Positions 1,610 through 62,400 of a stretch of 64,000 bases of DNA are shown one piece after another; the stretch's first letter is position 1, and each line of letters opens with the position of its first letter. Where the stretch lies: contig RDEW01000003.1 of the NCBI GenBank assembly GCA_011109175.1, forward strand, positions 1,422,429 to 1,486,428, given 5' to 3'. Both the position numbers and the translations under genes were made by a program. The stretch is from Dicyema japonicum (taxonomy: Eukaryota; Animalia; Dicyemida). Below the pieces are notes generated by a model. The model was given only the letters and a program-made list of their open reading frames with translations, was not told the DNA's origin and made no database searches.

Positions 1610-2600
1610 ATGAAGGTTGTCTATTTTACTCTGTTACAAAAGCAAGAAATAATAACCTTATCTGAGATACCAAATTTTTCCATCCAATTTGCTGAAGGAA
1701 AGACGAAATTTCATAAGAACTGCGTCATTATTCAGACTAAAAGACTCATTGCCGACTCAACTAGTTTTTTCAAAACAAGTGGAATTTTATTAACACGTGG
1801 TCGCTGTGGAAGAAGATGAACAGAAGAGGATATTTATTGAAAATGTTCACCTCAAAAATGGACATCCTGGTCGTGATAGACTTCTTTCTCTTCTAAAGAA
1901 TCTAGTCTATGCATCTTGCAGAGATGAAGTTATGGTTGTTCTCAGGTCTTGTTCACAATGTCTGGCAAGACGGCTTATGAACACTCGACCAACTATAACA
2001 CCTATCAGAGCATATACAGTGAGAGAAAGGTACTAATTAACTATTCTAATTTCAGGTATATTTTTGATTTAGTTGATCTACGACACTATTCAAATTTCAA
2101 TGAAAATTTTTTCTGGCTTTTGGTTGGGTTGGATTCCTTTTCCAAATTTTGCTGGACAAGACTTCTAAAGAGTAAATCGGCTATGGAGGTGTCAAGTGCA
2201 ATAGAGCATAATTTTAATGTTTTGAAAACCAACCATTTTGCACACGGACAATGGCAAGGAATTTGTAAATGAAAAAATGTTCGAGTTATGCTCAACATTG
2301 GTATAAAGCACGTCAGGGAACGTCCTAGGTGTTATGGGTGCAAGGACAACCACCATAACTCGTTCCGTGATCATCGGAATTTGCAGTTGATACAGGATCT
2401 TATATTGTTCGGTTCTGGGCACTCCGGGGAACTTTGTGGTCCTCCACAGATGAAACATTTCTTTGCCCAATTGCAATATGCCCGAAATATTGACAATCAA
2501 ATATCTTGAAGGTGGTCTTCTGGCCCACTCACAATCGATTTCTATCCATCCAATGACAGACGTAGCTTCTGCCCGTGACGTTAAGCTCATCTTCACAACA
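1610..2600 (+). pseudogene. Ginger-like DDE integrase (H2C2 zinc finger plus rve core) with a 26-nt intron; degenerate
   Basis: HLKNGHPGRDRL..CSQC zinc finger, then FDLVDL..LDSFSKF..LHTDNGKEFVN core. Removing GT-AG intron 2030-2055 joins VRER|YIFD in frame. In-frame stop near 1790 and later frameshifts. Confidence 0.8.
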
Positions 2601-2610
2601 ATTCCATGAT

Positions 2611-2686
2611 TTTCATTCCATGCTCTTGTCTATATCCGAGAGTTCAACTTTCATTCCATGCTCTTGTCTATATCCGAGAGTTCAAC
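2611..2686. repeat. 38-bp perfect tandem duplication
   Basis: tttcattccatgctcttgtctatatccgagagttcaac at 2611-2648 and 2649-2686. Confidence 0.95.
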
Positions 2687-2689
2687 CAA

Positions 2690-5150
2690 TGATCTGTCGA
2701 CTCCACTCTGGTCGCCGATTTGGGTTTGTCTTTCCCAGTTAACGGTTCCAGAGACAGATCCTTAATGCTTTCAATACAGCTTTTCTTTAAAACCTCTCCA
2801 GAGATAGCTTTTTTGATTTTATTAATCCTNTTTTTTAACGACTGCATCACCACACAAAAACGAGTAAATTAACTAATCAAGCGGATTTTAATCCAGATTG
2901 GTGGTAATCCTCCTTCTCTTAGAAGAGTGTGCCATAACCTCCCTGTTACTCCGCATCTCCACATCAAATTCAGTCAAAATATCTTCTTTAGAGTTCAGTG
3001 GGCTATCCTCACGACATATCAGTTCTACAAGTTGGGAGGTAGCAGAGGCGTATTCTTCACCGTATACCTTTTTTCCATGCTTATGTTAATGAACATACTT
3101 TCGAGCGTTCTCTTTAGCGCAACCGATTGGATGTATGTCATCTTTGATTCTTCAATAGATAATTTATCCATTTGATTCTTGAAGCATCTTGAGATAACTT
3201 TATCCCATGTCAAAACCACTGGAATAATCTTCACTTAATTCATAGAGTAGCGAAAGTTCATTTGCAAGCTAGTCATTTTAGAAAGCTCGACATTTGTTTC
3301 ATCAATACATTTGAAAAAAATAGTGTAATTTTCTGCAATAAATTTTATTTAATAAATATTTCATCTGAGTGTCCTTGAGGGACTTAACATCCATGCTTTC
3401 CCTATCGAAAATTCTATATTTAGAGGCAAGAAATCCTGCGATCTTAGCTTTCTTTATTTGCAGGTTTGAGGTTCAACTTGAGTGACGCAAGCAGTTGCTG
3501 TAATAGCATTTTCAAGTATGGACTCCATAACTTTGTTTTTAAGAACATTACTTCCCTTGTCTTCAAGAACACCCAAATATCGATATCCATTGACTCCTTC
3601 CAGAGTCTCACATCATGATAACGATTTAACATTAGAGGCTGACTTTTCCGAATTCATCTTCATGCCGGCAACATGAAAGAATTCGCGAACAACTTCCATC
3701 ATTTTAAATATTTCTTCTTTTAGTCCAAATATTTTTAGGTCATCAATGAAAAACAAATGATTGGTAGAATAAGCCAGAATATTAGGATCCTCTTGATTAA
3801 TTTGGAGTCTTAGGAACATAGAGTTAAGGATCCTGCTCAAGGGTTCCACTGCCATAACAAATAGTTGAGGGGATAATGAATCTCCTTGCAGCATTCCACG
3901 TCCCAGCTTTACAGAACCAATTCTTCTTCCATCTAAGTGGAGATTTACAGTCCACTTCTTGACTATGGTCTTTATTAAGTTACAATCCAACGGGGTATTC
4001 CTGAACAGTCCAATAGATGAAATAAAAATTCATGATCAACAGAATCAAAGGCCTTCTTCACATCCACCCAAGCAGAATAAAGGGCGTTTCCATACTCCTT
4101 ATTTAAGCATTGATTAATAAGGGCCTGTTCCTTAGCGCCCTGACAATGTTTCCTCGTTTCCAGCTGATTGTCAGATAATAGACCAAACGAATCCACAAAA
4201 TCTGAGAGTTTAGAATTAACACATTTAGTAACAAGCTTATATAATGTTGGCATACACGTTATAGGACGTAAGTCTTAAGAAGTCTCGCAATCATCCTTTT
4301 TAGGTATTAAATAGGTTATTCCAGTATAAAACTAACTTTCAGGCATATATTCTCCATTAATAGTTCGATTAATCTCAGTATATGAAAAACCATGTACAGA
4401 TTCCATTTTCTTAATAAAGAAATTGTATGACCCATCGCATCCATACGCCTTCCAATCGGGGAGCCATTTAATAACATCCAGGATAAACTCATTTGTGAAC
4501 TCTGACAACATGCCTTTAATAACAGTATTTACTTTACCCACACTGTCATATGGCACGTGCATCTCTTTTCTTTTAGACCACACTTTTTTCCAGAACGACA
4601 TACAATCCTCATCATAAAAACCTAATTCAAAACAACAGTTGTCCTTACGAAAGTCCTTCCTCAAATAATGTACAGCTATTTGCTTCTTCTTAATTCTGAA
4701 GGTCACACAGTAGAGCCTCAATTCTGGCAAGCTCCCCCTTTTGTATCCATGGGCACAAAGAACATCCATAACCTTTTGTTTTTTCAAACACAGAGAGAGC
4801 CTGTGTAGAAAAACGATTGACAAGTTTTAATTCTGCGACAGCATTGAAATTTTCTTATTAGTGTTCTCCAACCATGTAAGAATATCAGTAATTTGATATC
4901 TTGAGGAGGATTATCTTTCGGAATATAATAAATTGCAGAATTTAGTCCCGACAAAATATTAACTCTGACATACTTTCTCTGAATTTTGGTGTGGTTTTCG
5001 AGTATCCCTCGGGATTGACTTAATTTTATCAGCTGGGAAGCCTGCTGCCTCGAGAGTTCGCGAAATAATTCATGCGGTGTGACGAGGAAAGCGACCTGCA
5101 CTCCTTTTGAAAGACAATGTTGATAAATCATTTGTTGTCAAATGACCCTC
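2690..5150 (-). mobile_element. R4/Dong-like non-LTR retrotransposon remnant (RT region, frameshifted)
   Basis: RT motifs WKAYGCDG, QGAKEQALIN, WVDVKKAFDSVDH, QGDSLSPQLF, NHLFFIDDLKIF, YRYLG spread over several frames. The NHL..DDLK pattern is typical of the R4 clade. Confidence 0.8.
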
Positions 5151-7569: not shown

Positions 7570-7920
7570 AGGAATAATGAAGATTACAGACAATACATCG
7601 AGTCATGTTTCTCATATGCATACGCTTCGTGGAGACCGTCCATATCTTTGGCAAATATGAGGAAAGTCGAGTAAAAGAGGGCTTTCATAGTGGCATTTCA
7701 TTAGATTTGTGGAGATCATCGAAGCAGACCAACGCCTCTGAAAAACCTTATGAGACTAGAATGCGGCCCGTATATTCAGTCAGTCGTTCGTACGATTATG
7801 CGTGGTCACGAGGAAGGAACACCGAACAAAGATGAGGTCACTGTTGAAATGCATGGGGATCACGCGATAATTAGTTTGTTTTTACCGTGGTCTTGGGTTG
7901 TTAAATAAATAAAATAAATA
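7570..7920 (+). mobile_element. LINE 3' fragment with terminal stem-loop and (TAAA)n tail
   Basis: YRQYIESCFSYAYASWRPSIS (post-RT region), stem arms ggatcacg 7857 / cgtggtct 7886, then aaataaataaaataaa. Confidence 0.75.
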
Positions 7921-8379: not shown

Positions 8380-9378
8380 GACTTCAGACTCAGCAGACAT
8401 AGAAATCCAATGTTCTGAATTAAGTATCGAATGACGAATTATACTGGTTTGAAGTCCGCTGGTTGAAAATTAAAAACTTGTAGGATCATCTGTCTGAATC
8501 TACACGTGTAGGATAATATGATTATATGTTGCTAATCATAGTAACTGATAATTCACTTAAGGCTGACTGGATTAAAACAGACATTGATGCCAATTTCCTC
8601 ATTTCTAATCTCCTATTAGTCCTTAAGAAATGGGATTACAGGCTGTATCCACCTAAATGAGATAACGTATATTGTATTGATCTGGATAAAGAAAAATCAA
8701 TTGTGGATAAAGAATATAGTTCAACCTCCTGGCTTAGTAACAATTAGACTACCTGATTAATGCTCATTGAAGTGTTTTTATGGACTGTGACATTTATTAT
8801 TGATCGGCATTTATATATCTTATTTTGATCAAAAAATCTTGTGTTTAACAATTATATTTGTTGATATCACGTTACTTATACGCTCATAAGCTCATGTTAG
8901 AAAGAATTTGAGACGAATTCCAATAATGAGAGGTGACAATTTATTCACGTGACATCACTGAATCACTATATTTCCACCATTTTGAGTGATTAATTTACTT
9001 ACCTACTTGATCGAATGATATTTTCGTTCTTTGCATTTTTAATTCCTCAGAAGTGTCATGGGAAGACCCTAAAGATGATCAGTGTGTTGCAGGAATCCAA
9101 AAAAAATCCTCGCTTCCCTACTTCAATTGAGGGATTTCCACAGTTGCGAATATGGATGGCAGTGATGATTTGGAAGATGCGCCTCACTACGGCCGTGAGG
9201 ACTGGACAAAATTTCTTTCAGGTATATACGGGGATATTAAAATAAAAAAAACGATTAATTCGCAGAGATTTTCTTTCAAGTAAAGTGTGAAATACTTACT
9301 TTTCCTCGAGACCCAATCAAGGGAATTTGAGAAGTGTCCAAGCCACGTTACAGGACTAAATACTATACCTTCCAACTA
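8380..9378 (+). CDS. Unidentified multi-exon gene (boundaries approximate)
   Basis: Open stretches separated by short GT-AG segments, ending ..EIFFQVKCEILTFLETQSREFEKCPSHVTGLNTIPSN*. No family recognised. Confidence 0.3.
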
Positions 9379-9399
9379 ACTCCTACGTTCTGTCATTAA

Positions 9400-10500
9400 T
9401 TAAGTAGTTGATTTTGGTTACTTTTTCCAGAGTTGATATTACATCCGTGGGAATCATGTAAGATTCACAGTGTCTTTTAGTTCTTGTGATTGCTAGTTTT
9501 TTATAAATTAAGTTGATAACCAAAAAAATTTAATACAAGTTCTACAGGCACAGATCTCCGTGAATCTCGTTTGGAATCCTGATAGGATAGCCACGAAGTC
9601 AGGGCAGATACCATATGGGTTTCGGATTGATTTTTTAACGAATAATTAATTGTGTCCAACGAAAATACAAATGAAAATGAAAAAAATTAAATCCCATTTT
9701 TTGGGATAGTTGGGGGAAGGGGGGGAATTAAAACTCATCACAACTGACCTTATGCAAGAGTCTAACTAATTCTGAGATAGGTACATAGATCTGTGTATTG
9801 ATTTAAAATTTCACGAAATGAAAAAGCACCATGGCTTGATAATTTCAAGGATCAGTGAACCTAATGAAAGACATCACTGGAATCCAGACTCTCACGCTAA
9901 TTGATATCAATTTTGTTTCTAAACAACTTGACTCTGATAAGTTCCCCAAATGTACTTTTATCAGTAACCTCTTTGTTAGCTATGTTTTCGAAAGTAACTT
10001 CAATTGGCAGATTTGAAATCCTTGTAAAAATCAGTCAAAGGATCACATTAATTCGTAAATTTGGAGGTTACTGAAAAAGACTATTTTTCCTACCAGTCGA
10101 TGATGTTTAGATTTCTTCAAAGTTATGGAAATAGTTTTCTTAAGCAGCGAAGTAGGTTGTAACTATTGGATCACTTTGAAGCTTCAGCCCCACGTGCTTT
10201 TTGTAAGAAACTAATTTGCTTGATGATAGCTTAAAATCATCTCAAATAAGTAAGATGGAATCCAAGGAAGCACTGAACAGTAAATACCTACAACTATGCT
10301 CTTCTATCTTGGTCTCACTTTTCATCAACTTTTAATAGATTCAAAATCTCAGTATATGACTACCACTGGTTGTGTCTTGATCTTCACTAAGGAAACGAAA
10401 CTGACTCGTCCAAAGAAAACTTTTACTCATATAGTGCTTAGGTAACTTACCACTTGTTCGATTCATTATATGACATTGATAATATGCTGAATATATTAAG
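9400..10500 (-). CDS. Unidentified probable multi-exon gene
   Basis: Exon-like open stretches such as ..RISNLPIEVTFENIANKEVTDKSTFGELIRVKLFRNK.. No family recognised. Confidence 0.25.
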
Positions 10501-10977
10501 ATTAGTTATTTAGTACAACATGCAATTATCATGTCAGAAAATAATTTACAAAAACCAACTCTCACGCCTATAAAACCATTAAGATTTAACTGAAGATTTC
10601 AGCAAAGAATTTAGTTCATCGTCATGCGCGTCATTATGAATGCATGATGAGATGAACTTCTCTAAGAGCCAAGTCATAGTTCTATGAAAAATAAGCCGAT
10701 GATAAACCAATTCACACATCTGATGAACCATTACGACCTAACACCGAAGATCCCAAATGCATTGACGACAATACTGCATTGAACATTCTGAGAATCATGC
10801 CACTAGCTCTCTTATAACAGAAAAGCCCACTGTATTGGTAAAAAAATCTAAAAAACTAACCAAATTAATTAAAAGTTTAGCACACACCAATTTTTCAAAA
10901 TCGACAAAAACGGAAAATATCAATAAATCGATCATAACCATTAACAATCTCAGTTAACAAAAATAAGCAAATATTAG

Positions 10978-11978: not shown

Positions 11979-12084
11979 ATTATTATCAATTGGTTAACCA
12001 ATTTAAAATTTATTTTTTATATTAAAATCATGTTAATTATTAGTAAAATCGAAAACTTACGATACTACTGATTGTTTAGTATTA

Positions 12085-13438
12085 TTATCTAAGTTTGAGA
12101 CACTGCTCAGCATTAGTGACTAAAATATAGTCACACGTGGGTTTACTTTTAAATTCACATACGTAATTCCTCCTTAACCTGCACGAAATTGCCTTCATGT
12201 AGCCACATCCTTTAAATTCGACACAACTATGACGACGACTTGGCTCAAATCGTCCCCAAATTTCGTACGGCTTCGCATTATTTGTCATTTTACAATTGCA
12301 TCACGTGTTGTGCCGTCAACGAAAGCACCGTTAATCTTCTTGGTGTTCAAAATTATGTTGAATTTACTGGAATACATAAATTGTGCTTGAATGACTTAGA
12401 CGCTAACCAAATATGAAGTTTGCCTCGTTCTCGCTGCTCAGAATCAGTGATTTTCCTCCTATGGTCTCACATCGTTTTTTGGAGGTCTCAAAGGTTGAGC
12501 TTTGGTTGAAGTAAAGATAGCAGTAATTTCCAAATATCCCGGCACAGTTACATCGCAGACGAGTTCCTATTCCGTGATTTAACGGATTTACTTGATGTTG
12601 AACATACTACAGCGTTTGTGGACTTTGGGTTAACTGGCATCCATTTTTCGCAGTCGTTAAGCACCGCGTGCGTAGATCCCTTGTTCTTTTGGTCGAACCA
12701 GTTCTCATATGGAAGCTAAACAGTAAAAATGGCCTGAACATTTCCTGTTGAAGTGATCCACATGTTCCTTTTGTGCATATCGACAAAGTATGCTGAAATT
12801 TATACAAACTGTACTAAAGAGAAAGTTATTCTCCGTTCGGTCCTGTACCATGGGGATGGTCATTCCAAATCTCCCGCATAACTCGACGGCACTTTCCTTC
12901 GTCATTACAGCGTCTACGTAAATGTAGCATTTTGTAGGTGAACATAGGACATTTGAGGATCCTACAATAAAAGTTTCGATTACGAATAAAATCTGTGAAT
13001 ATTAGAATTCCAAGGCAATGCAGAATCCTAAATTGTACCAAACTCCTACATTTAATTTCCGTCCTAGTGAACGGACAAGTGTAAAATAATACAGATAATG
13101 CACCATATTGTATGTGAAGGGTCATTTCTCTGATATCAAAAGAATTTGAGTTTTCATTTGTACAGCACATGTTCATTATTTGCTACAAGTGCTTCTATGA
13201 GATTTGTTGAGGTTGGTGTACCTCTATTGAATGAAATGTCTGCTTAGCTTCATGTTGGGTGAAATCTTTGTCTTCTGGTGGGCATATACAAGGTGACAGA
13301 CTCAGAAAACATCGGAAACCCAATGATTTTAATAACGGAAGTGTCGAAATGCACATAGGATCCTGGTTCGACCCAAACTTGGGAGATGGTAGTTAACATG
13401 TGTGCTGCAATAAGGAACCAGTAGACAAAGCATCCCAT
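12085..13438 (-). CDS. Secreted protein with two C-type lectin-like domains
   Basis: Hydrophobic N-terminus. Domain 1: ESAVELCGRFGMTIPMVQDRTENNFL..ENWFD..WMPV..NAVVC. Domain 2: NYCYLYFNQSSTFETSKKRCETIGG..SENEANF..WGRFEPSRRHSCV..ISCRLRRNYVCE. Confidence 0.7.
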
Positions 13439-17216: not shown

Positions 17217-19837
17217 ATGTACGACGATATTTACAATTTTGAGGAGAACAGCGATTTCCAGATAGACAAACAGGTGATTTACAAAATTTGAAGTATTTTA
17301 GGTCAACCAGAAGCGTCAAGTGCGGATGACAGCCATGAAAGGTTCCAGTGTAGACGTACGACCGATGACTGCCATAGTGGGGGCTGGTTATAAATCGGCA
17401 TATCAAAGTAAACTTATTCTCTCAAAATTTAGTAACCGGAGGGGGACAAAAGAAGAAATTAAACGCTATCACTCAGCTGGAGAAGGAGGATAGCGAAGGG
17501 TAGAGACTGAAATGAATTTTTAGCTTTGATATTAAAATCAGAAAACAGGAACTACAGATTGAGGCCTTAATTTTGGATTCTTGTTTTGCACGTGAACAGG
17601 GAAACGATCAGCAGGCTTTAGAAAAAGCCAAGGAAGCTGTGCGACATGAGAAACAGCTCAAGAGACTGAGTGAACAAGATTCCAACTACGAATATCCCAA
17701 TCTAGACATCCTTTTTTCTGTAACTCCCCATATCCCCATTTTCAGGTGACCTTGAATTTGGCCCTGCAACTGACTCATAACGGATTCTACAACGAAGCTC
17801 TCGGAGTGTACACGAGCTTAGTAAAGGACAAAAAGTACAACTCGGCAGGTTCCAAGTTGTAATATTCCAAATAGGACGACTGCGAGTGAACATGGGGAAC
17901 ATTTACTTTACGATGAAGGACTACAGAAACGCCATAAAGATGTATAGAATGGCACTGGATCAGATTCCAAAAAATCACCGCCAACTGAGGTAGAAATGAA
18001 CGGAAATTTCCAGGAAACGAATAATGATAAACATTGGAATCAGTTTTATGACGATAGACCAACTGAGCGACGCCATCTCCACATTCGAGCATATAATTCT
18101 CGAAAAGAAGGATCTCCAAGCTTCCTTTAATCTCCTAATTTGCTATTATTTGATGGAAGACAAGGAAGGGATGAAAATGTCCTTCCAACAACTCCTCAGT
18201 TTCTACAAACCGAACGAATCAGACAAGTATTCGTCCTATTTCACGGTACTCCCACATTCTTACAACTAAGGACGGTAACAAGAAACTGGAACTTCTCCTA
18301 GATGTTATAAAGAACGACCAACTCTCTAAATACGAGATCGCGTGCCAGCAAAGGGATATTACCTCAATAAAGAGGTCTGCCAAGCTCATCTCCAACGTCA
18401 TCGAGAAGGATTTTGAGACTGGCTTACAATTGGTGCATCGAGCAGGCCAGACAGTCCTCTAATAGCAGTCGGTTGGTCAACGATCTTGTCATAGACACGG
18501 CTCTTTTATATTTGCGGAAGAATAATATCCAAAAAGTAATGATTTATTTATCAAAGGCGGTGGAAATTCTCAAATCATTCCAAAAGTCCGACCCGAAATC
18601 CTCAGGGACTGCCTCCTGCAATTTGTCCTTCATTTATTTTCTGGTTTTTCCGGTTTTTTGTTAAATCGAGAAACAAGATTACTCTTTGGCCGAAAAATAT
18701 GCCAACTTTGCGATGGAGGCTGACGAACTGAATCCAAACGGTTTTCAAATTTTACTTATCACAGTTCTCGTAAACAAGGGAAACTGCTATTACGCCAAGG
18801 GAGACGTAGAAACTGCCATGAAGTACTACAACTCTGCCCACGAGGTCGACCCGTCTTCGATTGGGGCACTGTTTAATCTCAGTTTATCTTCGTTATAACG
18901 CAGTAATTCTGCACAAAAGTCAGAAGGACTACAACAAGGCAATCGAGTATGCCTTCAAATTGAGAGGGATCTTGCCAAACGATCCCCAAGTTTACCACCA
19001 TATCGCGGACATGTGAGAGATGTCTAGATTACGTTTAGATACTACAGAGTGGAGGACTTTGATCATTCTCTGGACTGGTTCCTTACATTTTTTATTCAGG
19101 TACATTCAACTGGTGGGAATCGTTCAAACTGATGCTTCAGTATTGGAAAAGTTGGGGGAGATTTACGAGGCTCGTGGAGACAGAGCTCACGCACTTCAAT
19201 ACTACTCTGATGCCTACAAATGCTATCCAGCCAACCCACGTGTCGTAGAATGGCTTGGAAGCTTTTATATGAATTCGCGCCTTCCTGAAAGAGCATTGGT
19301 TTACTACGAGACCGCTCTGAGACTAAAGTTTGGAAGGATATTGATTTCTTAGTCCTAAGGAGATCGTCTGGTACCTTCATTTGGCCACGTGCTACCGACA
19401 AATGGGGAACTCGTTCCAAACATATACTCTTTTAAAGGCAGCACATGATAAATTTCCTAACAACATCGATTGTGACTTTTTCAGTGACTTTAGGTCTTAC
19501 AAGTCTCATCCAGGTCGCCAAGGAGGTTGAGCCAGAGGAAGCTGCCGAGTATTCGAGTCGATTGGAGAAGATATATAGGGAACGACACCGACGCCAAGTA
19601 ACCTTGAATTCTCATAGTACAAGGACTCCATATCCGCAGGGAAACTCCAGCGTAGAAGCACCGAAAGTTCTAACAGAGATCAAAGTGGAAGTGGCAAAAT
19701 AATAGACAGAGTAGAAACGAGCCAATCAAACTCACTAGAATGTATTTTTGGTAGTAAAAGTAGTCGAAAACAATCAAAGCATCAAAGAAAAATCTGATGA
19801 AAAAAGCGATGACGACTTCCAGGTATTACTTCCGTAA
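17217..19837 (+). CDS. IFT88: Intraflagellar transport protein 88 (TPR protein), many short introns
   Basis: RPMTAIVGAG, QALEKAKEA, NLDILFSVTLNLA, RLRVNMGNIYF..AIKMYRMALDQIP, RLAYNWC, VLVNKGNC, VVEWLGSFY. Introns such as 17500-17523 (24 nt). Confidence 0.93.
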
Positions 19838-19925: not shown

Positions 19926-20663
19926 TTAAATTTCAGATTCCAGTTCATTCTCGAGGAGTGAACTTGAAGAATTTGACGATGAGATATCCCACATCCTATT
20001 TTGTGACATTTTGTTGTCCTCGTCACCTACAAATAGGTGAAATCCTAATTCCTACATTCCAACTCAATTTCCCCGTTCAACAGCTTGTTCTGAACATCGA
20101 TAAGATCACGTGCTGATTTGCACTCAGAATACATCGAGAGTCGGGTCTGATTCATATTTAAAAAATTGGTTCCCCATGGAAATGGGTCCAGAAGTCTACA
20201 GGCGGCCTCTTTGTCCCCTGACAATCAATTTACAGCCAAACCGATTATGTAAAGAGCTGATGCAAACGCTTCGACGCAGCTGAGCGTGCAGGCCTGTCCA
20301 CCACGTGTTGAGTTGCCTGCGATTAGAAAGGGAAGGAGTCGTGCGTGCTTGTGACGTAGTTTTAGCTTATGGAGATCGTCGATTTTATTCCATGAGCAAT
20401 CAATGGCACATATTCCAATCTTTTCGACCATTTCTTTGTCCTCCGGGGAAATCACGTGGGTAGCTAGCGGAGTGAGGACGATCCCGTTGAATCGTTTACG
20501 TAGTGGGATGAATTCTGCATACCCAAGCTTTACTAATCTCACTCCACTGCACTTCTTTCGATCACATTGGCCTAGATCCCACAAACGAAGATTGTAGTCG
20601 AATGTGTCTAAAAATGATTTTTTAATCGTCACAAGAAGCAGTTGATTCATCTGAGGAGCACAT
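19926..20663 (-). CDS. TSR3: 18S rRNA aminocarboxypropyltransferase TSR3
   Basis: WDLGQCDRKKCSG, LTPLATHVISPED, IDCSWNK, RLLPFLIA, LSCVEAFASALYI, FPWGTNFLNMN. Short introns restore the frame. Confidence 0.92.
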
Positions 20664-20769
20664 TTATTTAAATTTATTTTATTCAATATTATTTTTTATT
20701 AATTATCGGTGATAATTTTTTTTATTTATACACAATATTTAGAATTTTGAGATTTACCCTTATGTTGGT

Positions 20770-23743: not shown

Positions 23744-24973
23744 ATGAAGAAAAGCGAACTGTTAGCATTGAAGGGAGAATTTAGCACTAATTATGAACGA
23801 AAACCGCTAAGCGAATTTGCCGAAGGTTTCATAAATAAAAATTGCAGAAATAAGATTATTGTGTGAGCAAACTAAATTATTCACTTTGATAGATAAAAAT
23901 CTCGAACTGATTCCGCTAAAGGATCGAGTTTTTATTTTATAAATCCTCAAGTTATTGGATTCCCAGAACACCAACTTCCTAGTAATCGGGGTCATCGGTC
24001 CCCAAGGCTCCGGGAAGTCCACGTTATTGAACTCCGTCGCGGAATTCTACAAACCGAACATTACTCGATTATTTAAGACTAAAAATGTGGAGAGGTCCAA
24101 ACAGGAAGCTCATGTAACTAGAGAGGTCGGGGTCCTCAATACTTGTGATGGAGTTTTGCTGATTGATACTCCGGTTTTTGAGTTCTTTTACTTTAGCCGC
24201 TTTTTTCGGCCTCCGTTTTCGATGAGTTTATCCTTTCTGACAAATCTCTGAAAAACTTTGGCTGGAAATACACAAATTCGTCGAAATTGAGAGCTACCGA
24301 ATTTTAATGCTCATCTTGAGCATATGCCACGTGGTCTTGGTGGTCCACGACCCAGTTTTGGATGAAGACTTCTTTAGGTTATATTCTTTAATTAGTTCAG
24401 ACGTCTAGAAGTCGCAGTGACGCTGAAACCGGTTCCCTTGGTTTTCAAAGACATCCATGAGCAGTCAAAAGTATTTGAATTCAAACCTCACGTGGGTTAT
24501 TCTGTTTTTTTCAAATTTCTAGTGCAAATTTTTAACCAAGTTGATTCCATCGTCTTCAGTGATCAAATCTTGCGGCAAGAATTGGACTCAGCAGTTAAAC
24601 CTCTGTTAGAAAGTGACAGGTCGATCAACAGAGGTCATTTTTGTATATATTCAGACTCGTTGGAGGAAGGATCTCCAAATATTGTGATTCTGCCACGAAT
24701 CGATGGTATTTGGCTTAACTTATCTCCCAGAGCTTCCAGTAGTTTATAAAGAGAGGGTTAAGGAACTTGGGGAGAAGTTGAAGAGGATTGACGCTGGTAA
24801 ATTCACTGGGAAAAATATTTCAGAGGAAAACTGGTAGTTTCTAGATTTGAATGAGGTACCTGTACGTTCGGAATATCTGGAATGTGATTCTCCACGATCT
24901 AAAAATTGAAAATTTTATTAATGATGAAGGCTCCTTTACAAAGCGTGAAAATACTCTTAATTTTCCTAAATAA
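23744..24973 (+). CDS. SMG9: Nonsense-mediated decay factor SMG9 (G-fold protein)
   Basis: NFLVIGVIGPQGSGKST, VLLIDT, LILSICHVVLVVHD, KPHV and C-terminal ISEENWYLYVRNIWN match SMG9 blocks. Start codon approximate. Confidence 0.8.
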
Positions 24974-25384: not shown

Positions 25385-26900
25385 TTGAGTGGTTGACATC
25401 TCTCCAATTATGCCTTTATCGTCCTATTGCTTTTTTAATTGCAATTTTGGATCTCAAAAGGATCGTTTCGAACTCTAAACAGGAGACTTTGTAGACGATA
25501 TTGGAAAGATAAAATTAACTTGTTGCCCTTGCAGAGATGAGGTGACGCTAATACTACTATCTTCCGACAACCGTCACTATGGAATGGAATTTCCAGTACG
25601 TTTATCAATTGGAAACCGCCTAATCAAAGTATCATCTAGAATAACCGGCAGTGTTGTCCTCGGCCGGCCGCGGAAACGAGAAGATTTTAGGACAAAATAC
25701 TCCTCCATTGCTATGTTGGCAGGGGTCCCCATATCGTGGCGGAGTATGTGTCCAAAGAGCCTCCATCTTGAATCAGTAATCTCACATGATATTGGCTCAG
25801 TTCCTGTTCTCTTGTATAAGATTTCAAACTTCTTCGATATTTTTGTCTCTTGGAGACATCCGATTGATATCTTGTATTTTGAAAGGTCTTCACAAAGTTC
25901 TTTTCTTTTCCATGCAATTTTCGTGTTTTTCAGACATACTTTTCAAAAGGGACGTCACCACCTCAACCAAAGCTGCGACCGTGATATGCAAGAAAGAATA
26001 CAAAATCGAAACATGCAGCTCTAAAAATAAATATCACTTTGTAGGGCGCAGTCACTTTTGGCAAATTGTTAAATCTTTTGATGTGAACAGGATAAAATTG
26101 TCAATGGCGATAAGGTGAAATGGTCACCCAACTATGGGTTACTATTACATTCTTTCTCGGTGTTCCTGAAGTTTTCTAAATAAAAACTAAAGTGGAAAAA
26201 ATGCCCCGAGTGGGACTCGAACCCACGACATTCGCGTTATTAGCACGACGCTCTAACCAACTGAGCTATCAGGGCTGTTAATGGTTATTTAAATTTTTTT
26301 GAATCATAATTTTTATTTCTTCCAACATCTTTGGATTGGTACAACTATAAATATCAGATAAGTTTCTTATAGACCAAATTTGATGAGTTCACTGTCTGAA
26401 TGTATACTAAAAAAGGATTTATTATCAGAGGAACTTAACATTAGTGAATTTGTTATCCAGCAGGTCATAAACATAACCACGTGTCTTCCAACATTTACTC
26501 ATATTGAAATGATATTTTCCTAAAGATTAATGTTAACCTTCAAAATCTAAAGTCCAAAATCCCAGCTACTAGAATTTTAGTGATATCCGTATTTCTTAAC
26601 ATCGACGACGAATTCGATGGGGCCTAAGTACAGTTTAAAGATTTGAAGCGAAAAAATGATAACTACTCAATTGACCACTTCAACGTTTTTAGACAAAGTG
26701 CTCCTGGTTTCCATAATCTTCACACTTTTCTCTTTTGTTCCCCAGCGACCCAAAGAGAGTCGACTTTATATCGATTTTTATTTGCTTCAATACATATTGA
26801 CTAAGGGATGTACAGTATTCGAGAAACTATCCGCACGATCAGTCTTTCACAATTCTCCCTGTTTGTTGCCAATGCGTGTGGCTCATTTAGGTTATATCTA
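25385..26900. repeat. Segmental duplication copy B
   Basis: Colinear with 20770-22480; the two tRNAs are offset by 4351 bp. Confidence 0.85.
26202..26275 (-). tRNA. trnI-AAT: tRNA-Ile, anticodon AAT (identical second copy)
   Basis: Identical 74-nt sequence to 21851-21924, with a T6 terminator. Confidence 0.95.
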
Positions 26901-33087: not shown

Positions 33088-33209
33088 TTTGTAATATGGA
33101 AACAATTCGGGTGTGCCCAAATTCGCCCGAGAACGAGATATTGTATTTTTAAATATAAATTATTATATAAATCAACGATTATTAAATAATAATTAAAAAA
33201 AACAAAAAT

Positions 33210-39279: not shown

Positions 39280-41533
39280 ATGAAAAACTTCATTAACGTC
39301 GTTCTTGTAGGAGATGGTAATTATCTTTCTTTATGACTCTAAAATAGCTGGAACCGGCAAGACTTCGATAATTCTTTCACTTGTAGGAGAAGAATTTATA
39401 AGCGATGTATATGTTGAATTTACCTATTTCTAGGTTCCTCCCAAGATCGACAATATCACCATTCCTCCTGATATGAGTCAAGATGGGATTAGCACGAATA
39501 TTATTGACACGTCACGTTTACTTATCATTTATTTTTAGTCCAAGAACAAGATGAGATTGAAATAGCCGATCATGTCCGTCAGGTGATCTAATTTACTCAT
39601 TTTTCAGGCTGACGTTGTCTGTGTGGTTTGTGACTGTACTAATATGTCTTCATTTTACTCGGTTGGGAATTTTGGTTTACTTTCAGCTGGAGGAGTTCTG
39701 GTTGGATCTAATTAGAGACTCTTCCTTCGACGGACCCAGAAAACCAGTCATCATAGTTTGCAATAAGGCAGATCTTGTAGAACAGGCTCAAATTGAAGTT
39801 CTTATAACTTTAATGCTTAGTATGCGGTAGAGATGATGGATAAGCATTTTCAAATAGCCACGTGCATAATGGTTACTATTTTTAATATTTTTAGTCCTCG
39901 GCTGTGACTTTAAAGAATATTAGCGAGGTTTTCTACTACTCGCAAATGTCGTATTTGTACCCGATCCCCGTTTTGTACGACGCAGAGAAGTTCTGTCTCA
40001 CAGAATTGTGTCGAGAAATTTTTACTCGGATTTTTCACGTTTGATGTCTTTTAATGTTAGATTTGTGACCAAAATAACGACGGAATTCTCGACGATGATG
40101 AGATGTATGTTTTCCAGGTATTTTCTTTGTTTATGCAAGAAATACTGCTTCGACTTTTCTCTCGAACCCACTGCCTTGATGGAGGTGAAATCAATGCTGT
40201 ACGATTTCAGTGAGAATTTTGTGAGGGATGGAGGGATCACCAAAGAGGGTACCTATGTGTGATTATAATAGGCTTTATTAAACTGCAAGTCGTGTTTATT
40301 CAACAAAACCAGCAGGAAACTGTATGGAATGTGCTTAGAAAGTTTGGATACGACGAAGATCTAACTTTTATGGATGCCATGAGGATAGAAATGTGACCCC
40401 ATTATGATTTAAGGAAGACTGAATGTCTCAAATAATTCACAGATCGTCGAATGACTGAGCATGGAGTTGAATTTGTCCTTTACCTCTTCGATAAGCACGA
40501 TTCAGTTTGTTTTTTTAAATCACGCGTGTTAGGATAATGACGGATATTTGTCATTTTCGGACTTAAATCAATTCACATTGCTGGATCCGTCGTTCTTTTT
40601 CAACGACACGTTTTATTTCGACATTATTGGACGAATAAGCCGCAAACTGTTTCTTATGATGTGGCGGTTTTCCACATTTTTTTAAATTTTCAGAGTTATG
40701 GTTCATGTGGAACCAATTTCGGTTTTGAGGGCTTTTGTTTACCTCGGATTTGGCTTCCTTTACGGTCCTGTGGATTCTGCCATTAAAGGTTGGTGGCATT
40801 TGTTTTTTTAGTTATACCACGTGTTGGGTTGTTTGATAGTGGAAGGTCTGTTTTTTTCAAAGGTTTTCTCCACGAGTTATCAGTCAAAGGTTCAGTCGTC
40901 CTTTATTGTTAGATTGACCTTTTCTCTCAATTTCAAGTGAAGTATTCAGCTTTGAGGCTCACAAATTTTGGGTTTGACGAAATATTCACAAATGATTCCT
41001 ACAAGTTGTTAATCGTTAGGCTTTGGATTGATCTTTTAGTTGGAGGACTGCAATCCTACAAATTTTACGAGTGATAGTCTGGCATCTTGTGATGGTGCCT
41101 GTTTTCTGTACGATGGAACAGATCCTTCCAGTTTTGATGCGTGCTCACGTGTCTGTAAAGTAGGTCATTTATGGTGTTTTAAGCAAATTATGGTTGATGG
41201 ATATCCCACTCCTTCACTTGTAGTTATACGCGGTAACGGGGATCGTCGTCAAGTTATACAAGACACTCCACAGCAGCCACGTGTGTTCTGTTCTAATAAT
41301 CAACTTCCTTTGGTCGATTTTCCCGCCTCCTCATTCAAGGAATTTTTGAAAAATCTTTTTAAGGCTTTTTCAAAGTAATATAAATTTATCATTTGAGTAG
41401 TTCCGAGCCTGTTGAGAATGACAAAAAAATTAACTTTTTTCCGTTGAATATATCAAATACTACTTTGACTGTTTCTTTTTCTGTTGTCATACTTGTGATT
41501 GGTTTTTTTATCGGCAGATCATTAAATAAATAA
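39280..41533 (+). CDS. RHOT: Mitochondrial Rho GTPase Miro (GTPase-EF-EF-GTPase-TM)
   Basis: VVLVGD|AGTGKTSIILSLVGEEF, DQNNDGILDDDEM, QETVWNVLRKFGYDEDL, CDGACFLYD and C-terminal TM LTVSFSVVILVIGFFIG. Confidence 0.92.
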
Positions 41534-43650: not shown

Positions 43651-43664
43651 TTTCTACTAACAAT

Positions 43665-44010
43665 AATAATACCAGAAACCACGGTTACATAAACTAATTA
43701 ATCACGTGATCCCAGCACGCTCTAGCAAGGACCACATCTTGGCCGATGCTCCTCCCTCGACCCCACACAATCACGTATTGGTCGAGTGACTGGATCTTCG
43801 CAGTCATGATTATAAGTTCCGTGGTTCATTAGCATCATGGCTTCAAAAGGCATTGGTGGCTGGAACTCATCAGAAATCCAGCGTTCCATGATTTTGGAGA
43901 GCTCCTTTTTGACTAGATCTTCAAGACATTTGTCCAAGAGATGAGTGGGCCCCAGATATAACATGCTTAAGAGATGCATGGAGGCTTCTTTTCGGCTAGA
44001 TCTTCAGAAG
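43665..44010 (-). mobile_element. LINE 3' fragment with terminal stem-loop and (TAT)n tail
   Basis: Reverse complement reads ctgggatcacgtgattaattagttt..ccgtggtttctggtattattatt; same subfamily as 7857 and 50291. Confidence 0.7.
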
Positions 44011-46345: not shown

Positions 46346-47153
46346 TTATAAAGTAAATAAAACATGTCCGTCACATATTCCACTTTGAATTTTAACCAAT
46401 TTGAGAGATAATCGAGGACCAATCTCCTCCAATAGAACAGTCCTCTTCTCCTCAAGTTTTTCACTTTCAACCAAATCGGCCATTTCTTTTAATTGAGACA
46501 AATCAGGTGGAAGTCTTCGAGACAACAAAGAATCCACTGTGCCTCCCAATTTAGGAGTAGCCCCCTCAATGAGACTCTTCATTCTGATAGAATAATGTCG
46601 TAATTGGAAGACATCATCACAATAACAGACTGTCACACAACGCTTTATATTGTTAGATTCTACTTCCACCGCTGGAAATAGACCTTCCAATAATTTGATA
46701 ATCAACGTACCCACACGATCACCCACTTTCGATATATTTTTGAGAATTAAGAGAGGAGACATCACAAAGTCATATTTATTAAGCCCTTCCTTGGTTATAT
46801 TATCAGCATTTGTGACATTGAATGTAATAGTCGGTCCATGTGGGAGTTTAATGAGATTGAGTGTGAGTACGTCAGTCTGATTCAGAGTTATTAAATGAGT
46901 TAGCTCGGAGTCCTCAATCAGAGGTTGAAGGGAGTCTCCATAGTTGGAGTTAATACGGTGCGATGTGTTTGGCCTAATCATACTTCGAATGCTCTTTGTT
47001 AGTCTTGTAAGATTCACTGAACGAAGTCCAATGTTCACAACCATACAATAAGGTAATTTCACGTTTTCCTTTTCTGCTTTGCTTTTGGCTCTGTTACGTC
47101 TTGTTAATTTTCCCTAAATTATATTTTATATTTACTCTTCGTTTCTTCCCCAT
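46346..47153 (-). CDS. PPAN: Brix-domain ribosome biogenesis protein Peter Pan/Ssf1
   Basis: MGKKRR|GKL (22-nt intron 47114-47135), LIKLPHGPTITFNV, QLRHYSI, LPPDLSQL, LEEIGPRLSLKLVKIQSGICDGHVLF. Confidence 0.9.
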
Positions 47154-55144: not shown

Positions 55145-55450
55145 CGGATGCGCAGTGTCATAAGTGCAAAAGGCCTGATGGCTCTGGTTCGAATCTCGCT
55201 GCTGTACATTCCGGATGAAGGTGCCACGCATCTACAATGCTTTGGCTTGACGAGTGACGCCGTCATCAGTGAAAATTTCACTAGGAACCGAATCGTCTAC
55301 AAAAGGACTCACACGCAACAAAAAAAGGAAGTGAAAAGCTTTTCTTGGCTCCTCCTCATTGATTAGATATCATAACTGTTCTTTACTTAAATAAAGTGTG
55401 TCCTCTCTGGGTGGAACTATAGGTAACACGGCTCTGCGTAAAGTGCAGAA
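55145..55450 (+). mobile_element. SINE, second subfamily, with a third type of 3' tail
   Basis: B-box ggttcgaatc, body tgacgagtgacgccgtcatcagtg, aaataaagtgtgtcc, then tail ..tctgcgtaaagtgcaga.. Confidence 0.85.
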
Positions 55451-56239: not shown

Positions 56240-56330
56240 TGGCCATGTTAGTCGAAGATTGACGAGTGACGCTGTAATCAGTGATTCATAACTGGAAAAA
56301 AATTGTCTCAGGGACTCACACTTGTCAAAC
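56240..56330 (+). mobile_element. SINE body fragment
   Basis: ttgacgagtgacgctgtaatcagtg..aactgga..ggactcacac. Confidence 0.65.
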
Positions 56331-58130: not shown

Positions 58131-58429
58131 TAAATTTAATTTTAAATTTCGATCTTTTGTGAAATATTTGATATTAGCGAAATAGCTTTTTCCACAGAGG
58201 CAGAACATGCAGTACAACTTTCAAGATTTGCATAGACAAATGGTGGGAAACTTTTATTCGAATCTTTTTCATCTAACTTCATTTTTGAATTCCTTAAGTT
58301 TTCTTGGATTGCAACAGAAGCGTGTGTCTGTCGTCAACGATATCTTCGAGTGCACTCTAAGTATACTTGTATCTATTCTGAAGATATGTCAAAACAGTCC
58401 CCACCTCTCTCTATAGTATCCATACATTT

Positions 58430-59420
58430 ATTTATTTTATTTATTTAGAACCCGGATCACCAAGAAAGAAAGACAAAAAACGTCAAACAGTTAGGTAATC
58501 CCAGTTCTCGTAATCAAATGAGCCATCCAATGTCTATGGTCTCCTATTGTTCCCACTACCGTGCGAAAGCAGAGGAATCCGATTGGGGAGGAAAAACTTC
58601 CTAACCAATCGACTTTCTTTTGCCTTGGAAAAGGACAGGTTAAGCGGGTTTCCGTCCTCCTTACAGACATGAAGGAATCCGATTCGCGACTACGGTCGCA
58701 GCTTCCGTGAGTAGGGATTAACCGTTAATCAGAGTGAGGGCCCATCATAGATATAGTTTTCCGGTATATGGAATTGATTCTGTGGAGCGTAGTCTCTGAT
58801 AACGCGAATCTCCATGCAACAGAGGTACACTCCACATCTGGGGCGGTTTGCCGGTAGAGTTTTCCAACAGAAGCGTCCAAATTTAAAGAAGTCTTTCAGA
58901 CAACCGCGCGAATAAAATTCAACTTCTGCAGTCCTCCCAACCACAGCTTTAGGTTCGGACGAACCTTCGAATCAAAAATCTTCCCAATAAGAAGCTTTCT
59001 TGGGACTGTGTTGAAAGCCTTGTTTATGTCGATTGATACCATTATAGTTCGATGTGTGGTGGAATGACATTAAATCCATCGGCTTTGAATTGGATAAACC
59101 TTCCAAGACGAAAACCATGTTGAAAAGCCGTTTGAATAAGGTAATGGCAGATAGTACCAGTTTTTCAAGAAGTTTTAATAATGTGCTGGTTATGGAGATT
59201 GGCTTGTATGAAGCAGGTTGTCTTTCCGGTTTTCCAGACTTCAAAACTGGTTTGATAACAGAGTTCTTCCAAATATTGTAGTTAATAGACAGGTTAAATA
59301 CTGCGTGAGGTAGCCAATTGTGTATTTGTTTAGGTGTTTCAGGTGAATTGAAGATACTTTGTAGTACCGAGGTCCGTGAGTACTTTAATCCGGCGATAAC
59401 CTCTGAGTACCCATACATAG
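58430..59420 (-). mobile_element. Internally deleted LINE with 3' stem-loop and (TAAAA)n tail
   Basis: WKNSVIKPVLKSGKP..SYKPISITSTLLKLLEKL. 3' stem ggattacc/ggtgatcc at 58494/58454. Confidence 0.8.
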
Positions 59421-59499
59421 TTAAACAAAAAATTAAGACTAAATTTTATTGAAAGTACAAAATCAATAAGCATCATTTATTAGTTTGACACAAGTATCC

Positions 59500-62400
59500 T
59501 CAATGGAAATGGGTAATAGTGATATAATATCATTTGCAATGCTCAATGTCTGATCAGTTTTACGACGATATACTATTTCCAAGATAGATTTTGACATTTT
59601 GTTTTGCGCAATACTGGTAATATAAATTAATAATAAACCGACAGAATTTACTAGTAAGATTCATGTGGATGATAAGTGGGAATGATCTCCATAATAAGTG
59701 AAAATAAGACATTCGTGGAAACATCGTTCTAAAGTAGTAATATAACCGTACCTCACGCTCTACAATCGTCCAATATTCCTTAAATAAGCACAGTTTACTG
59801 ATGTTATAATCGGGAATTTCCTCCTTATGGGGAGATATGACTTTTATGTACTTATTTAACAGCGACACATTCCCTAGCAATAACCAATAAAGTGACCATC
59901 AACAAAAAGGCGCGAAGCCAGCCCACTCCTACAAAACACAAAAATGTGCTCTGCAGTACTGAGCAGACAGGAGTAAGAAAAACCTCAGAATTGATGTGAT
60001 TCAACGCACGTGCACAATAAGCCTATATAAATATAGTAAGCAAAACTTTTGTCTGGTAGATAAGATTAACAGGAACGCCAATCGACACACAAAATTGTTC
60101 TTTCTCATTCAGGGGATAATCACAAGAGCTTAGGTTGGAGTGCAATATATGTTCAATCGTGGTGGTACGTCTGAGCCAATAAACGAATAAAATACATTTT
60201 ACAATTTTGAATGAACATCGACACATACACCCCCCATTTCCAGAGCCCGTCGTTTTCAAGCTGATTCGCAAAACGAACAGTGCAATCGTCGACGATGGAC
60301 AATTCTTCATCTTTGACGACATTCAAGGACGTAATCACCATGGCAACCAGCCAACTAAAAATAAAAAAAGAAAATAACCTAAAACTGTGATCTTCAACTT
60401 CTTCAGAGTTACTAATAGGATTAAGCAAATCAGCCAAGTCATATTCAACGTTGGAGTATCTTAGAAGGAGGGCAAATGACATTACAAATTTACGCCTTAA
60501 ATTCGCGCCCAAATTAAAAAGAAGGTTGGGTCAATTTTGAAATATAATCTGAATGGGGGTTAGCAAGCCCATAATCCTCGTCAGACGTTATAATATTATA
60601 ATATTGAATGAATCACATCACTTATGGAAGCATCAGACACAGATATATACCTAAAGTAAATGTAATGTAAAAATACTTCAAAAGTACAGCAAACATGAAA
60701 GCCATGTGCAATCATCACACGCATTAATGATTATTCCATCATCCACCTTGACTGACAAAAGTCCGCCCATGATGAGGTATATACGCAGAACATCATCATC
60801 CATAGATATTTGGAGATGTCTCTTCGATCCATGATATAACCTGCTTTCTAATATATTCTCTCCGATGAGACCCACAGTGAGACATGATGAAAGCGAGACG
60901 ATGTAAACTATTTCCATAGCAAACTCGCATGCTTTATCGACTTGGAGTGATGACAATAATTTTTCTTATATTTGTAATCCCACTTCCAGGACAAGGCAGG
61001 TGATTAGTTAGCATAAACTCTTGAAGGAAACTCAATAATCTTTTCTTTTGTGAGTTTGGCAGACAATCCTCTGACTGCCATAAAATAGGAATAAGCCCAA
61101 GAACGAGTAATCTTTCCTCTAAGTATCACATTTATCTTTAAGTACCATTAAAATGAAATCCAGTCTTACTGAGTTAGTTCAATAAAGTCCCCGGGGTTAC
61201 TTAGTCTGAAAAAGTCCTCATCATTCGTCTTAAATGAGCATTTAGTAGCAAATCCAAAATCTGGGATTATACAACCTTGGTTACAGGCATCAATTTAATC
61301 GAAGACTTTTCAGGCTTGGTGTTGCAAAACTTTAGTAAATGCACGTCGTTAATGGAAGTAAGATTGCCCGACAAACGATCCTCAAACATAAAGTCACTGC
61401 GATCAGCATCATCGTTTACTAAAGTGAAGATAAAAATTACTAATTGCTTTAAGGGGGTGAATAATCCGGCACTCGTTTATAGGAAAGGCTGAAAATGACC
61501 TCGAAAACAAGGTCCCGACGTCGGCGATCGTCAATTTCCGGCCATTATAGAGGGAATTCTTACAACTAGACAGAGCCTTCTTTTTTTTGTGAAGGTAATT
61601 TATACTAATTCCTAGTACCCTCAGTAAAACTTATATACCCTCATAAATTTTATCAGATCTATTTTCACGTTTTACAACTAAATCAGAGACCGAATTTTCG
61701 TCCACTCGAGTGTCTTCAACAACCATTGACTCAAACGAAACGTTGACCTGGGATTAATATATAAGAAGAACCTGATCTTCAAAAGAACTAAAGGAATCAT
61801 TAACCAATCCATATTTCGTGAAATGCTTCACTGCAAATTTACAAACTCCTCTCGATAGGTCATATGACAAAAATTTTCCTCCCATCTTCGATACAGTATC
61901 AATTAGAGTGCTCTCATAGGATATATCTTGAGATCCCGTAGGCCAGCAAAAGTTTAAAGTGATTATCGCAGTCCGATTTAGTCCAAGACCACGAGGAGGA
62001 GTGTAGTCAATGTCATAAACTTTGACATATTTATCCCCTATTTTAGCTTTTGGTAAAAAAATGTTGAGTACCATGCGTGTAAATTTCATTAAAAAGACGT
62101 TTCGGTAACACCTGGAAACAATATTGATCCATAATCATTGTAGATTATTAAATTTCTGAACTTTGTCAATGACTCGTACATATCTATTGAAAAGTTAAGC
62201 AAATATCACTGTAATAACAAGAGAAATGTAAAATTTTAAAAATTTACAAATTTATTATTAATAATTTAATTTATAATCAAAAATATTTATATCTCATTGC
62301 ACAATATTTTCTGTCACAGTCCGTAGGTCAGATTCAATAAGCACTTTCGAGGCTGGCGTGTCATCGATGATTTGTTTTGTGGGGAAATACGAATATAATT
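59500..62400 (-). CDS. NUP98: Nup98-Nup96 precursor-like: autoproteolytic domain plus Nup96; no FG-repeat region seen
   Basis: APD: YGSILFPG..VKVY..PPRGLGLNRTAIITL..WP..GGKFLSYD..GVCKFAVKHFTKYGL. Nup96 C-terminus: FANQLENDGLWKWGVYV..EKEQF..GVP. Both ends approximate. Confidence 0.85.

Follow-up and report, generated by a model that had tools for sequence, protein, structure and literature searches.

The window and its genes

We analysed a single 64-kb window (64,000 nucleotides) of the Dicyema japonicum genome (contig RDEW01000003.1, positions 1,422,429 to 1,486,428; positions below count from the first letter of the window), in which the palindromic hexamer CACGTG is strikingly over-represented. 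The window matches the published genome of this animal (36.7% G+C, mean intron of 38 bp, 49% repeats; PMC6736024) in its micro-introns, its G+C content of 37%, its many fragments of long interspersed elements (LINEs) and its copy of the cilium gene IFT88. Among animals, introns this short have been reported only from dicyemids and myxobolids (PMC13644364). A myxozoan would not be expected to carry a cilium gene.

Gene identities were obtained from Pfam and PDB searches on open reading frames (ORFs), and exon models from a stop-free chain finder using GT..AG micro-introns; the resulting exon boundaries and counts are approximate. A self-trained codon-usage gene finder was also tried and rejected because the codon bias was too weak to be useful. 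The gene names proposed in an initial annotation of this DNA hold with the exception of FKBP8, and its counts of CACGTG per gene were reproduced: seven in the gene at 30977-33159, three in IFT88, three in TSR3 and two in SMG9. The features are collected in Table 1.

Table 1. Positions of the CACGTG sites, host genes and mobile elements in the window
Feature	Position	Strand	Evidence and remarks
CACGTG set	1794..60012	.	43 dispersed single copies, flanks unrelated
Gene without Pfam or PDB match (earlier "FKBP8")	30977..33159	-	expressed; spliced RNA-derived contig
IFT88	17516..19701	+	about 10 exons, micro-introns; TPR Pfam matches, PDB 8bd7, chain model
TSR3	20046..20695	-	Pfam Ribo_biogen_C, PDB 5ap8/5apg
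SMG9 pieces	23943..24746	+	P-loop Pfam matches, alignment with PDB 7pw9/6l54; sites 24328, 24489
Miro C-terminal GTPase exon	41040..41375	+	PDB Miro1/2 5kso, 5ksz, 9e2p
Nup96-like gene, part	59492..60530	-	Pfam Nup96 on 60156-60530, chain model; site 60007 (Ala-Arg-Ala)
Brix/PPAN	46349..47113	-	conserved gene, no internal CACGTG
KIF23	6635-7171	-	no internal CACGTG
Caspase	10796-11993	-	no internal CACGTG
ANT	52899-53826	+	no internal CACGTG
CACGTG sites in ORF-free DNA	8503, 8946, 10191 (8503..10196), 16150, 34341, 48193, 52340	.	no 40-codon open frame
Mutator-like element (MULE) transposon	34249..36881	.	inverted ends are 15-bp tandem arrays; FLYWCH-MULE transposase ORF 35322-36101 (-)
Short dispersed repeat resembling a miniature inverted-repeat transposable element (MITE), copy 1	43660..43760	+	site 43703
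MITE-like repeat, copy 2	50275-50375		site 50318
MITE-like repeat, copy 3	7810-7910	-	reads CGCGTG
LINE fragments (endonuclease and reverse transcriptase ORFs)	473..5137	-	transposon ORFs without CACGTG excess
Reverse transcriptase ORFs	50748-51458, 57115-57471		transposon ORFs without CACGTG excess

Abundance of CACGTG

A pattern search of the window returned 43 CACGTG, while 100 dinucleotide-preserving shuffles contained 6.05 on average (standard deviation 2.4, maximum 14). The initial annotation had listed 42 copies and had expected about 6-9. Each of its 42 positions reads CACGTG; its total falls short by one site, at 13730. The G+C content of the window is 37.1% and its CpG observed/expected ratio 0.88. 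When all 4096 hexamers were ranked by a first-order model, CACGTG came first at 7.15 times the expectation; the words ranked just below are its own overlapping derivatives, and the second-best palindrome reaches only 2.0 times. It is also the top hexamer under the maximal-order Markov model (43 vs 22.9 expected). Within the NACGTN family the other members occur 1-15 times each; AACGTG, GACGTG and TACGTG, described before as few, were counted 7, 1 and 3 times.

The 20-bp flanks on either side of the 43 sites show no relatedness, and CACGTG is therefore a dispersed word and not a repeat family. Unique flanks surround 37 of the 43 sites, the repeat-borne ones being confined to the MULE (four) and the MITE-like repeat (two). 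The G+C profile around the sites is flat up to 400 bp. At position -1 there is a weak preference for C, found at 30 of 86 half-sites in comparison to 25% before other CAC triplets (P 0.03).

The excess in coding sequence

In 7.2 kb of confident host ORFs, 10 CACGTG were present, whereas synonymous-codon reassignment, which keeps the proteins and the pooled codon usage, gives 1.96 and codon-order permutation 1.03. No shuffle in 3000 reached 10 (P < 1/3000). These two nulls rule out an artefact of amino-acid composition or codon usage, in agreement with the initial annotation, which had also placed the word in all codon phases. The coding sites are read as His-Val in eight cases, as x-Arg-x in eight and as Ala-Thr-Cys in one; phase 2 calls for a Thr with Cys or Trp after it, a rare and costly combination. 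Moreover, the 3030 residues of the host proteins contain 10 His-Val pairs in comparison to 3.85 in composition-preserving shuffles (2.6-fold, P 0.004), and 8 of these 10 pairs are spelled CACGTG, whereas fewer than two such spellings would follow from codon usage. Since the excess survives codon-preserving shuffles, inflates His-Val and overrides two residues of TSR3, the pressure acts on the DNA word CACGTG and not on amino-acid use. KIF23, caspase, Brix/PPAN and ANT had been named as genes free of the word, and indeed they are; each offers 0-3 contexts in which synonymous respelling could yield CACGTG.

The TSR3 sites spell His-Val (20453), Thr-Arg-Gly (20302) and Ala-Arg-Asp (20107). We compared the predicted protein by local alignment with 150 representative homologues, of which the closest is 54% identical, and took columns at least 90% conserved as conserved. 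There are 40 such columns, and the window protein deviates at five. The site at 20302..20307 (minus strand) replaces the Asn-Tyr of an N-P-V-N-Y-G motif by Arg-Gly: Asn131 is present in 137 and Tyr132 in 143 of the 150 homologues, and Arg and Gly occur there in none. Both conserved columns that lie under a CACGTG deviate, making up two of the five deviations (hypergeometric P 0.013). As judged from this alignment, one CACGTG thus displaces two near-invariant residues (N131R, Y132G).

In other genes the word occupies more tolerant positions. The site 24328 of SMG9 spells a His-Val that human SMG9 has too (C-H-V-V), and it is therefore a synonymous use of a permissive spot. In Miro, to which four sites had been assigned, two were verified in the GTPase exon, where a conserved Arg stands between variable residues (41146, Ser-Arg-Val; 41278, Pro-Arg-Val); the other two (39859, 40818) lie upstream of this exon, in putative Miro exons. 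The IFT88 sites are read as Ala-Arg-Glu (17589), Pro-Arg-Val (19237) and Ala-Thr-Cys (19386), and the word falls in a TPR loop.

The seven-site gene

The gene with seven sites, at 30977-33159, has them at 31204, 31501, 31630, 32224, 32397, 32500 and 32653. It encodes five His-Val pairs, every one spelled CACGTG. Its large exon specifies an acidic, low-complexity, Ser/Asp/Glu-rich protein, probably disordered, for which a search of 5.8 billion proteins returned no homologue. The name FKBP8 that it had been given is unsupported, as no FKBP or TPR domain and no match to any Pfam family or solved structure in the PDB was obtained for the frames tested. Neither internal repeats nor a tandem duplication were found in the gene.

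Expression is indicated by an RNA-derived contig of a 2017 run, which lacks 27 nt at 32532, a spliced-out GT..AG micro-intron. Four 2019 runs contain the stretch in unspliced form, as genomic DNA would, whereas the 2017 run is small and its contig spliced. Over 865 nt this contig shows 4 differences from the window, all of them outside CACGTG, and in the single-copy part of the sequence compared no variant falls on CACGTG among those listed for the DNA-like or RNA-derived contigs.

Two further sequence differences were noted in this gene. At 31541, three unspliced DNA-like runs are one base short of the window (depth 350/350), which has the look of an assembly error of 1 nt. Such an error would account, without any intron, for the change of frame from ORF 31532-31747 to ORF 31423-31635, and would put site 31630 in an exon. 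At 32708, an A>C difference accounts for about half of the DNA contig depth in two runs and is probably a heterozygous or population variant.

Distribution across exons, other DNA and transposons

Exons supported by homology or RNA (10.2 kb) hold 18 sites (1.76/kb) where 1.27 are expected, a 14-fold excess. Transposon-derived DNA (15.8 kb) holds 7 (0.44/kb; 1.62 expected, 4.3-fold) and the remaining 38 kb hold 18 (0.47/kb; 3.16 expected, 5.7-fold). The density in supported exons is about 3.7-fold above that of other DNA, a value which is somewhat inflated because part of the exon set was verified through ORFs holding sites. The preference for exons reported initially is therefore confirmed, but a restriction to them is not, as 25 sites lie outside supported exons, about 5 times the expectation. 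In 7.3 kb without any open frame of at least 40 codons on either strand (30% G+C) we counted 7 CACGTG in comparison to 0.42 expected. In addition, the longest open frame over the sites has a median of 70 codons, comparable to 74 at random positions. Both results rule out a signal of exons alone.

Intact transposon ORFs, those of the MULE together with the LINE and reverse transcriptase ORFs of Table 1, show no excess, with 1 CACGTG in 5.6 kb in comparison to 0.6-0.66 expected, and their rate differs from that of the host ORFs (P about 0.02). Six of the seven transposon-associated sites come from two elements, the MULE and the MITE-like repeat. LINE sequence, which is also present at 56-59.4 kb, had been described as devoid of the word when old. 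This is true, but gaps as long as the two empty stretches (4.7 and 4.1 kb) are within what 43 points placed at random on 64 kb would leave.

CACGTG in this window is thus a hyper-abundant, singly dispersed palindrome of long-resident DNA and neither a repeat, a by-product of codon choice nor an exon-only signal. The force behind it is strong enough to decide between codons, to raise the number of His-Val and x-Arg-x contexts and to displace two residues of TSR3. Protein constraint filters this pressure. Conserved genes that offer few permissive contexts are spared, and the pressure is not seen in intact transposon ORFs.

Sites in mobile elements and paralogous copies

The inverted ends of the MULE consist of a 15-bp unit, GGTAAATTCATCGCC, in 5.7 and 12.7 copies, and its transposase ORF fuses a FLYWCH zinc finger with the MULE transposase domain. 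The contig depth of the element is 60-340 times that of unique DNA. CCACGTGG is conserved immediately inside both ends (34341, 36665), and further sites are present at 34430 and 34514; the one at 34430 reads CATGTA in the opposite arm.

A 450-bp segmental duplication (21650-22138 and 26002-26485, 91-96% identical) carries a tRNA-Ile(AAT) on the minus strand of each copy (21851-21924 and 26202-26275). The site 26478..26483 lies 5 bp from the duplication end, and the sister copy (22125-22138) differs there by two adjacent bases and has no CACGTG. There are three paralogue contrasts: CACGTG and CGCGTG in the MITE-like repeat, the two copies of this duplication, and CACGTG and CATGTA in the MULE arms. 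In two of the three, the hexamer carries two changes while its flanks are 90-96% identical, an anecdotal observation which hints at concerted change.

Spacing of the sites

Gaps between neighbouring sites include 84, 89, 103, 129, 132, 149, 151, 153, 161, 168, 173 and 195 bp. When all pairs were considered, none was closer than 84 bp, 13 were 84-200 bp apart (median 151) and 5 were 201-400 bp apart. To evaluate this spacing, each site was jittered by ±100 to ±300 bp, which keeps the local density. Under this null the absence of pairs below 84 bp has P 0.005-0.013, the occurrence of at least 13 pairs at 84-200 bp has P about 0.0005, and a scan statistic combining the short-range hole with the 84-200 bp pairs gives P about 0.0003. 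In 30-bp bins, 6 pairs are found at 150-179 bp in comparison to 1.34 expected (z 4.2) and 4 at 420-449 bp in comparison to 1.04 (z 2.9). Exon length is not the source of the spacing, since pairs occur within single exons and across introns alike, and no tandem duplication was found that could produce the distance of about 150 bp in the seven-site gene. The pattern suggests a first-neighbour preference with a short-range exclusion zone and not a demonstrated periodicity; it is suggestive only, because the statistics were devised once the same data had already revealed the pattern.

Comparison with known systems

In its behaviour CACGTG comes closest to HIP1 (GCGATCGC) of cyanobacteria (PMC5861425). 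Both are short perfect palindromes many-fold above a composition-aware expectation, both are scattered as single copies over coding and non-coding DNA where they bias codon and amino-acid choice, and for HIP1 the cause is still debated between selection and drive. However, HIP1 is bacterial, an 8-mer with GATC, 15-300 times over-represented and provided with known cognate methyltransferases, whereas CACGTG resides in an animal nuclear genome with spliceosomal micro-introns, is a 6-mer with a CpG centre, reaches 7-14 times the expectation, has no known methyltransferase here and shows possible nucleosome-scale local order. The scarcity in mobile DNA that is typical of HIP1 is mixed in the window: transposon ORFs hold 1 site vs 0.6, yet the MULE and the MITE-like repeat carry 6, and the empty LINE stretches are within chance. 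Because the host is an animal, the word is different and no methyltransferase is known, CACGTG is no member of the HIP1 family.

The core is identical to that of the class-B E-box, bound by Myc/Max, USF, TFE/MITF and, at promoters and the centromere element CDEI, yeast Cbf1; recognition by a symmetric dimer and the weak C at -1 (CCACGTG), which resembles Myc/Max-type flanks, add to the likeness. Cbf1 and USF organise nucleosomes or act as chromatin barriers. Regulatory E-boxes, however, are few and stand in promoters or enhancers, whereas CACGTG here fills coding and ORF-free DNA at about 0.5-1.8/kb and overrides protein conservation. With 18 of the 43 sites in supported exons and up to 7 per gene, the distribution is not that of regulatory E-boxes.

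Uptake sequences (USS/DUS) and Chi are likewise words whose genome-wide excess is kept by a molecular process and reaches into coding sequence, but they are asymmetric, 8-12 nt long and tied to transformation or RecBCD. We know of no comparable process in animals. Periodic CG methylation in the nucleosome linkers of Dnmt5 algae resembles the present case as a CG-containing gene-body signal spaced near nucleosome size. There, however, all CG cluster periodically, whereas here a single hexamer is concerned, the window has no other conspicuous NCGN word or CG palindrome, and its harmonics are not established. Full-text searches of the published literature yielded no paper linking dicyemids with CACGTG and no comparable coding-region excess of this word in an animal, and the protein collections have no dicyemid proteins or contigs on record for comparison with a congener.

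What could maintain the word

The word probably reflects a genome-wide DNA-level pressure of the HIP1 kind that acts on chromatin via a dimeric CACGTG-binding protein, a mechanism that we infer. A perfect palindrome implies that duplex DNA is recognised by a symmetric dimer, and such recognition of palindromes is established for bHLH-ZIP proteins and type II enzymes. We tentatively prefer, as a possible reading, that CACGTG is recognised by a putative reader of bHLH-ZIP type, with a class-B E-box protein like Max or USF as the likeliest candidate. This reader would occupy resident DNA densely, and its occupancy would be kept up by selection or else by biased repair or gene conversion coupled to the reader. 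The lack of pairs below 84 bp, together with a preferred distance of near 150 bp, suggests that such a reader may act on the scale of nucleosomes, with roughly one site for each nucleosome where sites are dense. It could set or protect active chromatin on host genes in a genome of which half is transposons. D. japonicum, whose set of regulators is very reduced, has 14 HLH-domain genes, among its largest transcription-factor families (Lu et al. 2019, PMC6736024 Table S5).

Apart from the inflated exon density and the post hoc framing of the spacing statistics, several observations weigh against this reader. At large scale the scatter of the sites is near Poisson (variance/mean 1.28, 0.99 and 1.13 at 1, 2 and 4 kb) and no more even than random, which a requirement for regular coverage would not predict. 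For the same reason, and because ORF-free DNA and some mobile elements are also in 4- to 17-fold excess, the code laid over gene bodies that the initial annotation had envisaged is not supported as stated, in that the signal is not confined to gene bodies. Its proposal of spacing in multiples of about 150 bp survives as the first-neighbour preference; harmonic periodicity is marginal: among periods of 100-250 bp the Rayleigh statistic is highest at 143 bp, and its P, corrected for the look-elsewhere effect, is only 0.057. The autocorrelation of positions, which had been suggested as a check, contains the 150-179 bp excess but no excess of pairs near 300 bp in the same bins. There is no cross-correlation of CACGTG with one-mismatch words. 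Finally, a small parasite population could hardly keep up selection on about 45,000 weak sites, a point in favour of drive.

The main rival, a drive without any function, is somewhat unlikely. According to it, biased repair, gene conversion or low mutability would raise CACGTG in long-resident DNA, proteins would filter the outcome, and young transposons would have lacked the time to acquire it. This fits the nearly random scatter at 1-4 kb and the excess in ORF-free DNA with none in intact transposon ORFs. The contrast between the site-free genes, with almost no permissive contexts, and the weakly constrained acidic protein with its 7 sites also agrees with drive, as do the two-change paralogue contrasts, and the override of near-invariant TSR3 residues looks blind and not adaptive. 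However, the 18 one-mismatch neighbours of CACGTG are undepleted (146 vs 147), and CATGTG/CACATG, which arise by CpG decay, are if anything a little more frequent than expected (33 vs 26), although 64 kb gives low power. The very-short-patch repair of E. coli, with its CCWGG excess and CTWGG deficit, demonstrates that a repair enzyme dependent on sequence context can enrich its word; a similar T:G to C:G correction is disfavoured here because CATGTG/CACATG show no such deficit of deamination neighbours. Moreover, neutral drive predicts that unconstrained DNA is densest unless it is much younger, whereas supported exons are the denser fraction, and neither the hole below 84 bp nor the peak near 150 bp is expected from a context-free process.

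A more far-reaching form of the reader hypothesis would make CACGTG a genome-wide self-mark, in which an E-box dimer at about one site per nucleosome keeps resident genes active or retained, apart from transposons, under a pressure that rewrites conserved residues; this is unlikely. A modification site appears improbable. In that case a sequence-specific methyltransferase, or another modifying enzyme, would act on CACGTG, and resident DNA would be kept rich in the word, which would mark it as self or provide protected sites; the same idea has been discussed for cyanobacterial HIP1 and its methyltransferases. With its central CpG, the palindromic hexamer has the form of a type II recognition site, and PmlI and Eco72I cut CACGTG; the difference between host DNA and transposon ORFs would also fit. 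However, the CpG ratio of the window is 0.88 and no other CG word is conspicuous, CACGTG bears no marked decay signature, and the window encodes no such enzyme. The two dicyemid genome papers make no mention of a methylation toolkit.

A link to mobile elements, with CACGTG as a transposon target or binding site and the host sites as footprints, targets or decoys, is very improbable. The conserved motif inside both MULE ends, the presence of the word in 2 of 3 MITE-like copies and the site next to the duplication boundary are in its favour, but 37 of the 43 sites have no repeat context and the LINE ORFs lack the word. Sites in conserved exons swap codons without any change of length relative to homologues, and they are therefore not footprints of insertion or excision.

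Ordinary biology, that is, regulatory E-boxes together with codon or amino-acid bias and chance, is scarcely credible: it could account for the few sites 140-560 bp upstream of caspase, Brix/PPAN and ANT, where a Myc/Max/USF site would be unremarkable, but not for a count far above the shuffle maximum of 14, for 10 coding sites where codon-preserving shuffles give 1-2, or for 18 sites within coding sequence. The upstream sites comprise two CACGTG (12134..12307) at 141 and 309 bp from the caspase start and single ones before Brix/PPAN (47478) and ANT (52340), for which we infer no more than a possible promoter role.

Word excesses of this strength that cross coding sequence are known from bacteria (HIP1, uptake sequences, Chi). 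If the pattern extends over the whole genome, purifying selection on near-invariant residues can, in a metazoan, be outweighed by a force at the DNA level. The pattern would then also provide a tractable system for asking what maintains iterated palindromes, given a genome of 67 Mb with 5,000 genes, a single 6-mer and publicly available DNA and RNA reads, and would bear on chromatin organisation in a transposon-rich, regulator-poor parasite.

Other features of the window

Two micro-introns with minimal signals were noted on the minus strand, one of 25 nt at 11183-11207 (GTT...TAG) and one of 27 nt at 32532-32558 (GTA...TAG). The former joins two caspase ORFs and departs from the usual GTR and YAG rules.

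The segment 33065-34270 is a very high-copy repeat. Its summed contig word depth is 1-2.6 million in comparison to about 350 in the flanking unique DNA, which suggests thousands of copies; it contains ORFs of 110-124 aa without Pfam matches and has no CACGTG. A second dispersed family, of about 100-260 bp and 80-91% identity, is present at 1302-1565, 29712-29974, 44019-44293, 55244-55401 and 56256-56315. Its copies, none of which carries CACGTG, occur in both orientations beside LINE fragments, and the family may represent a LINE end or a short interspersed element (SINE).

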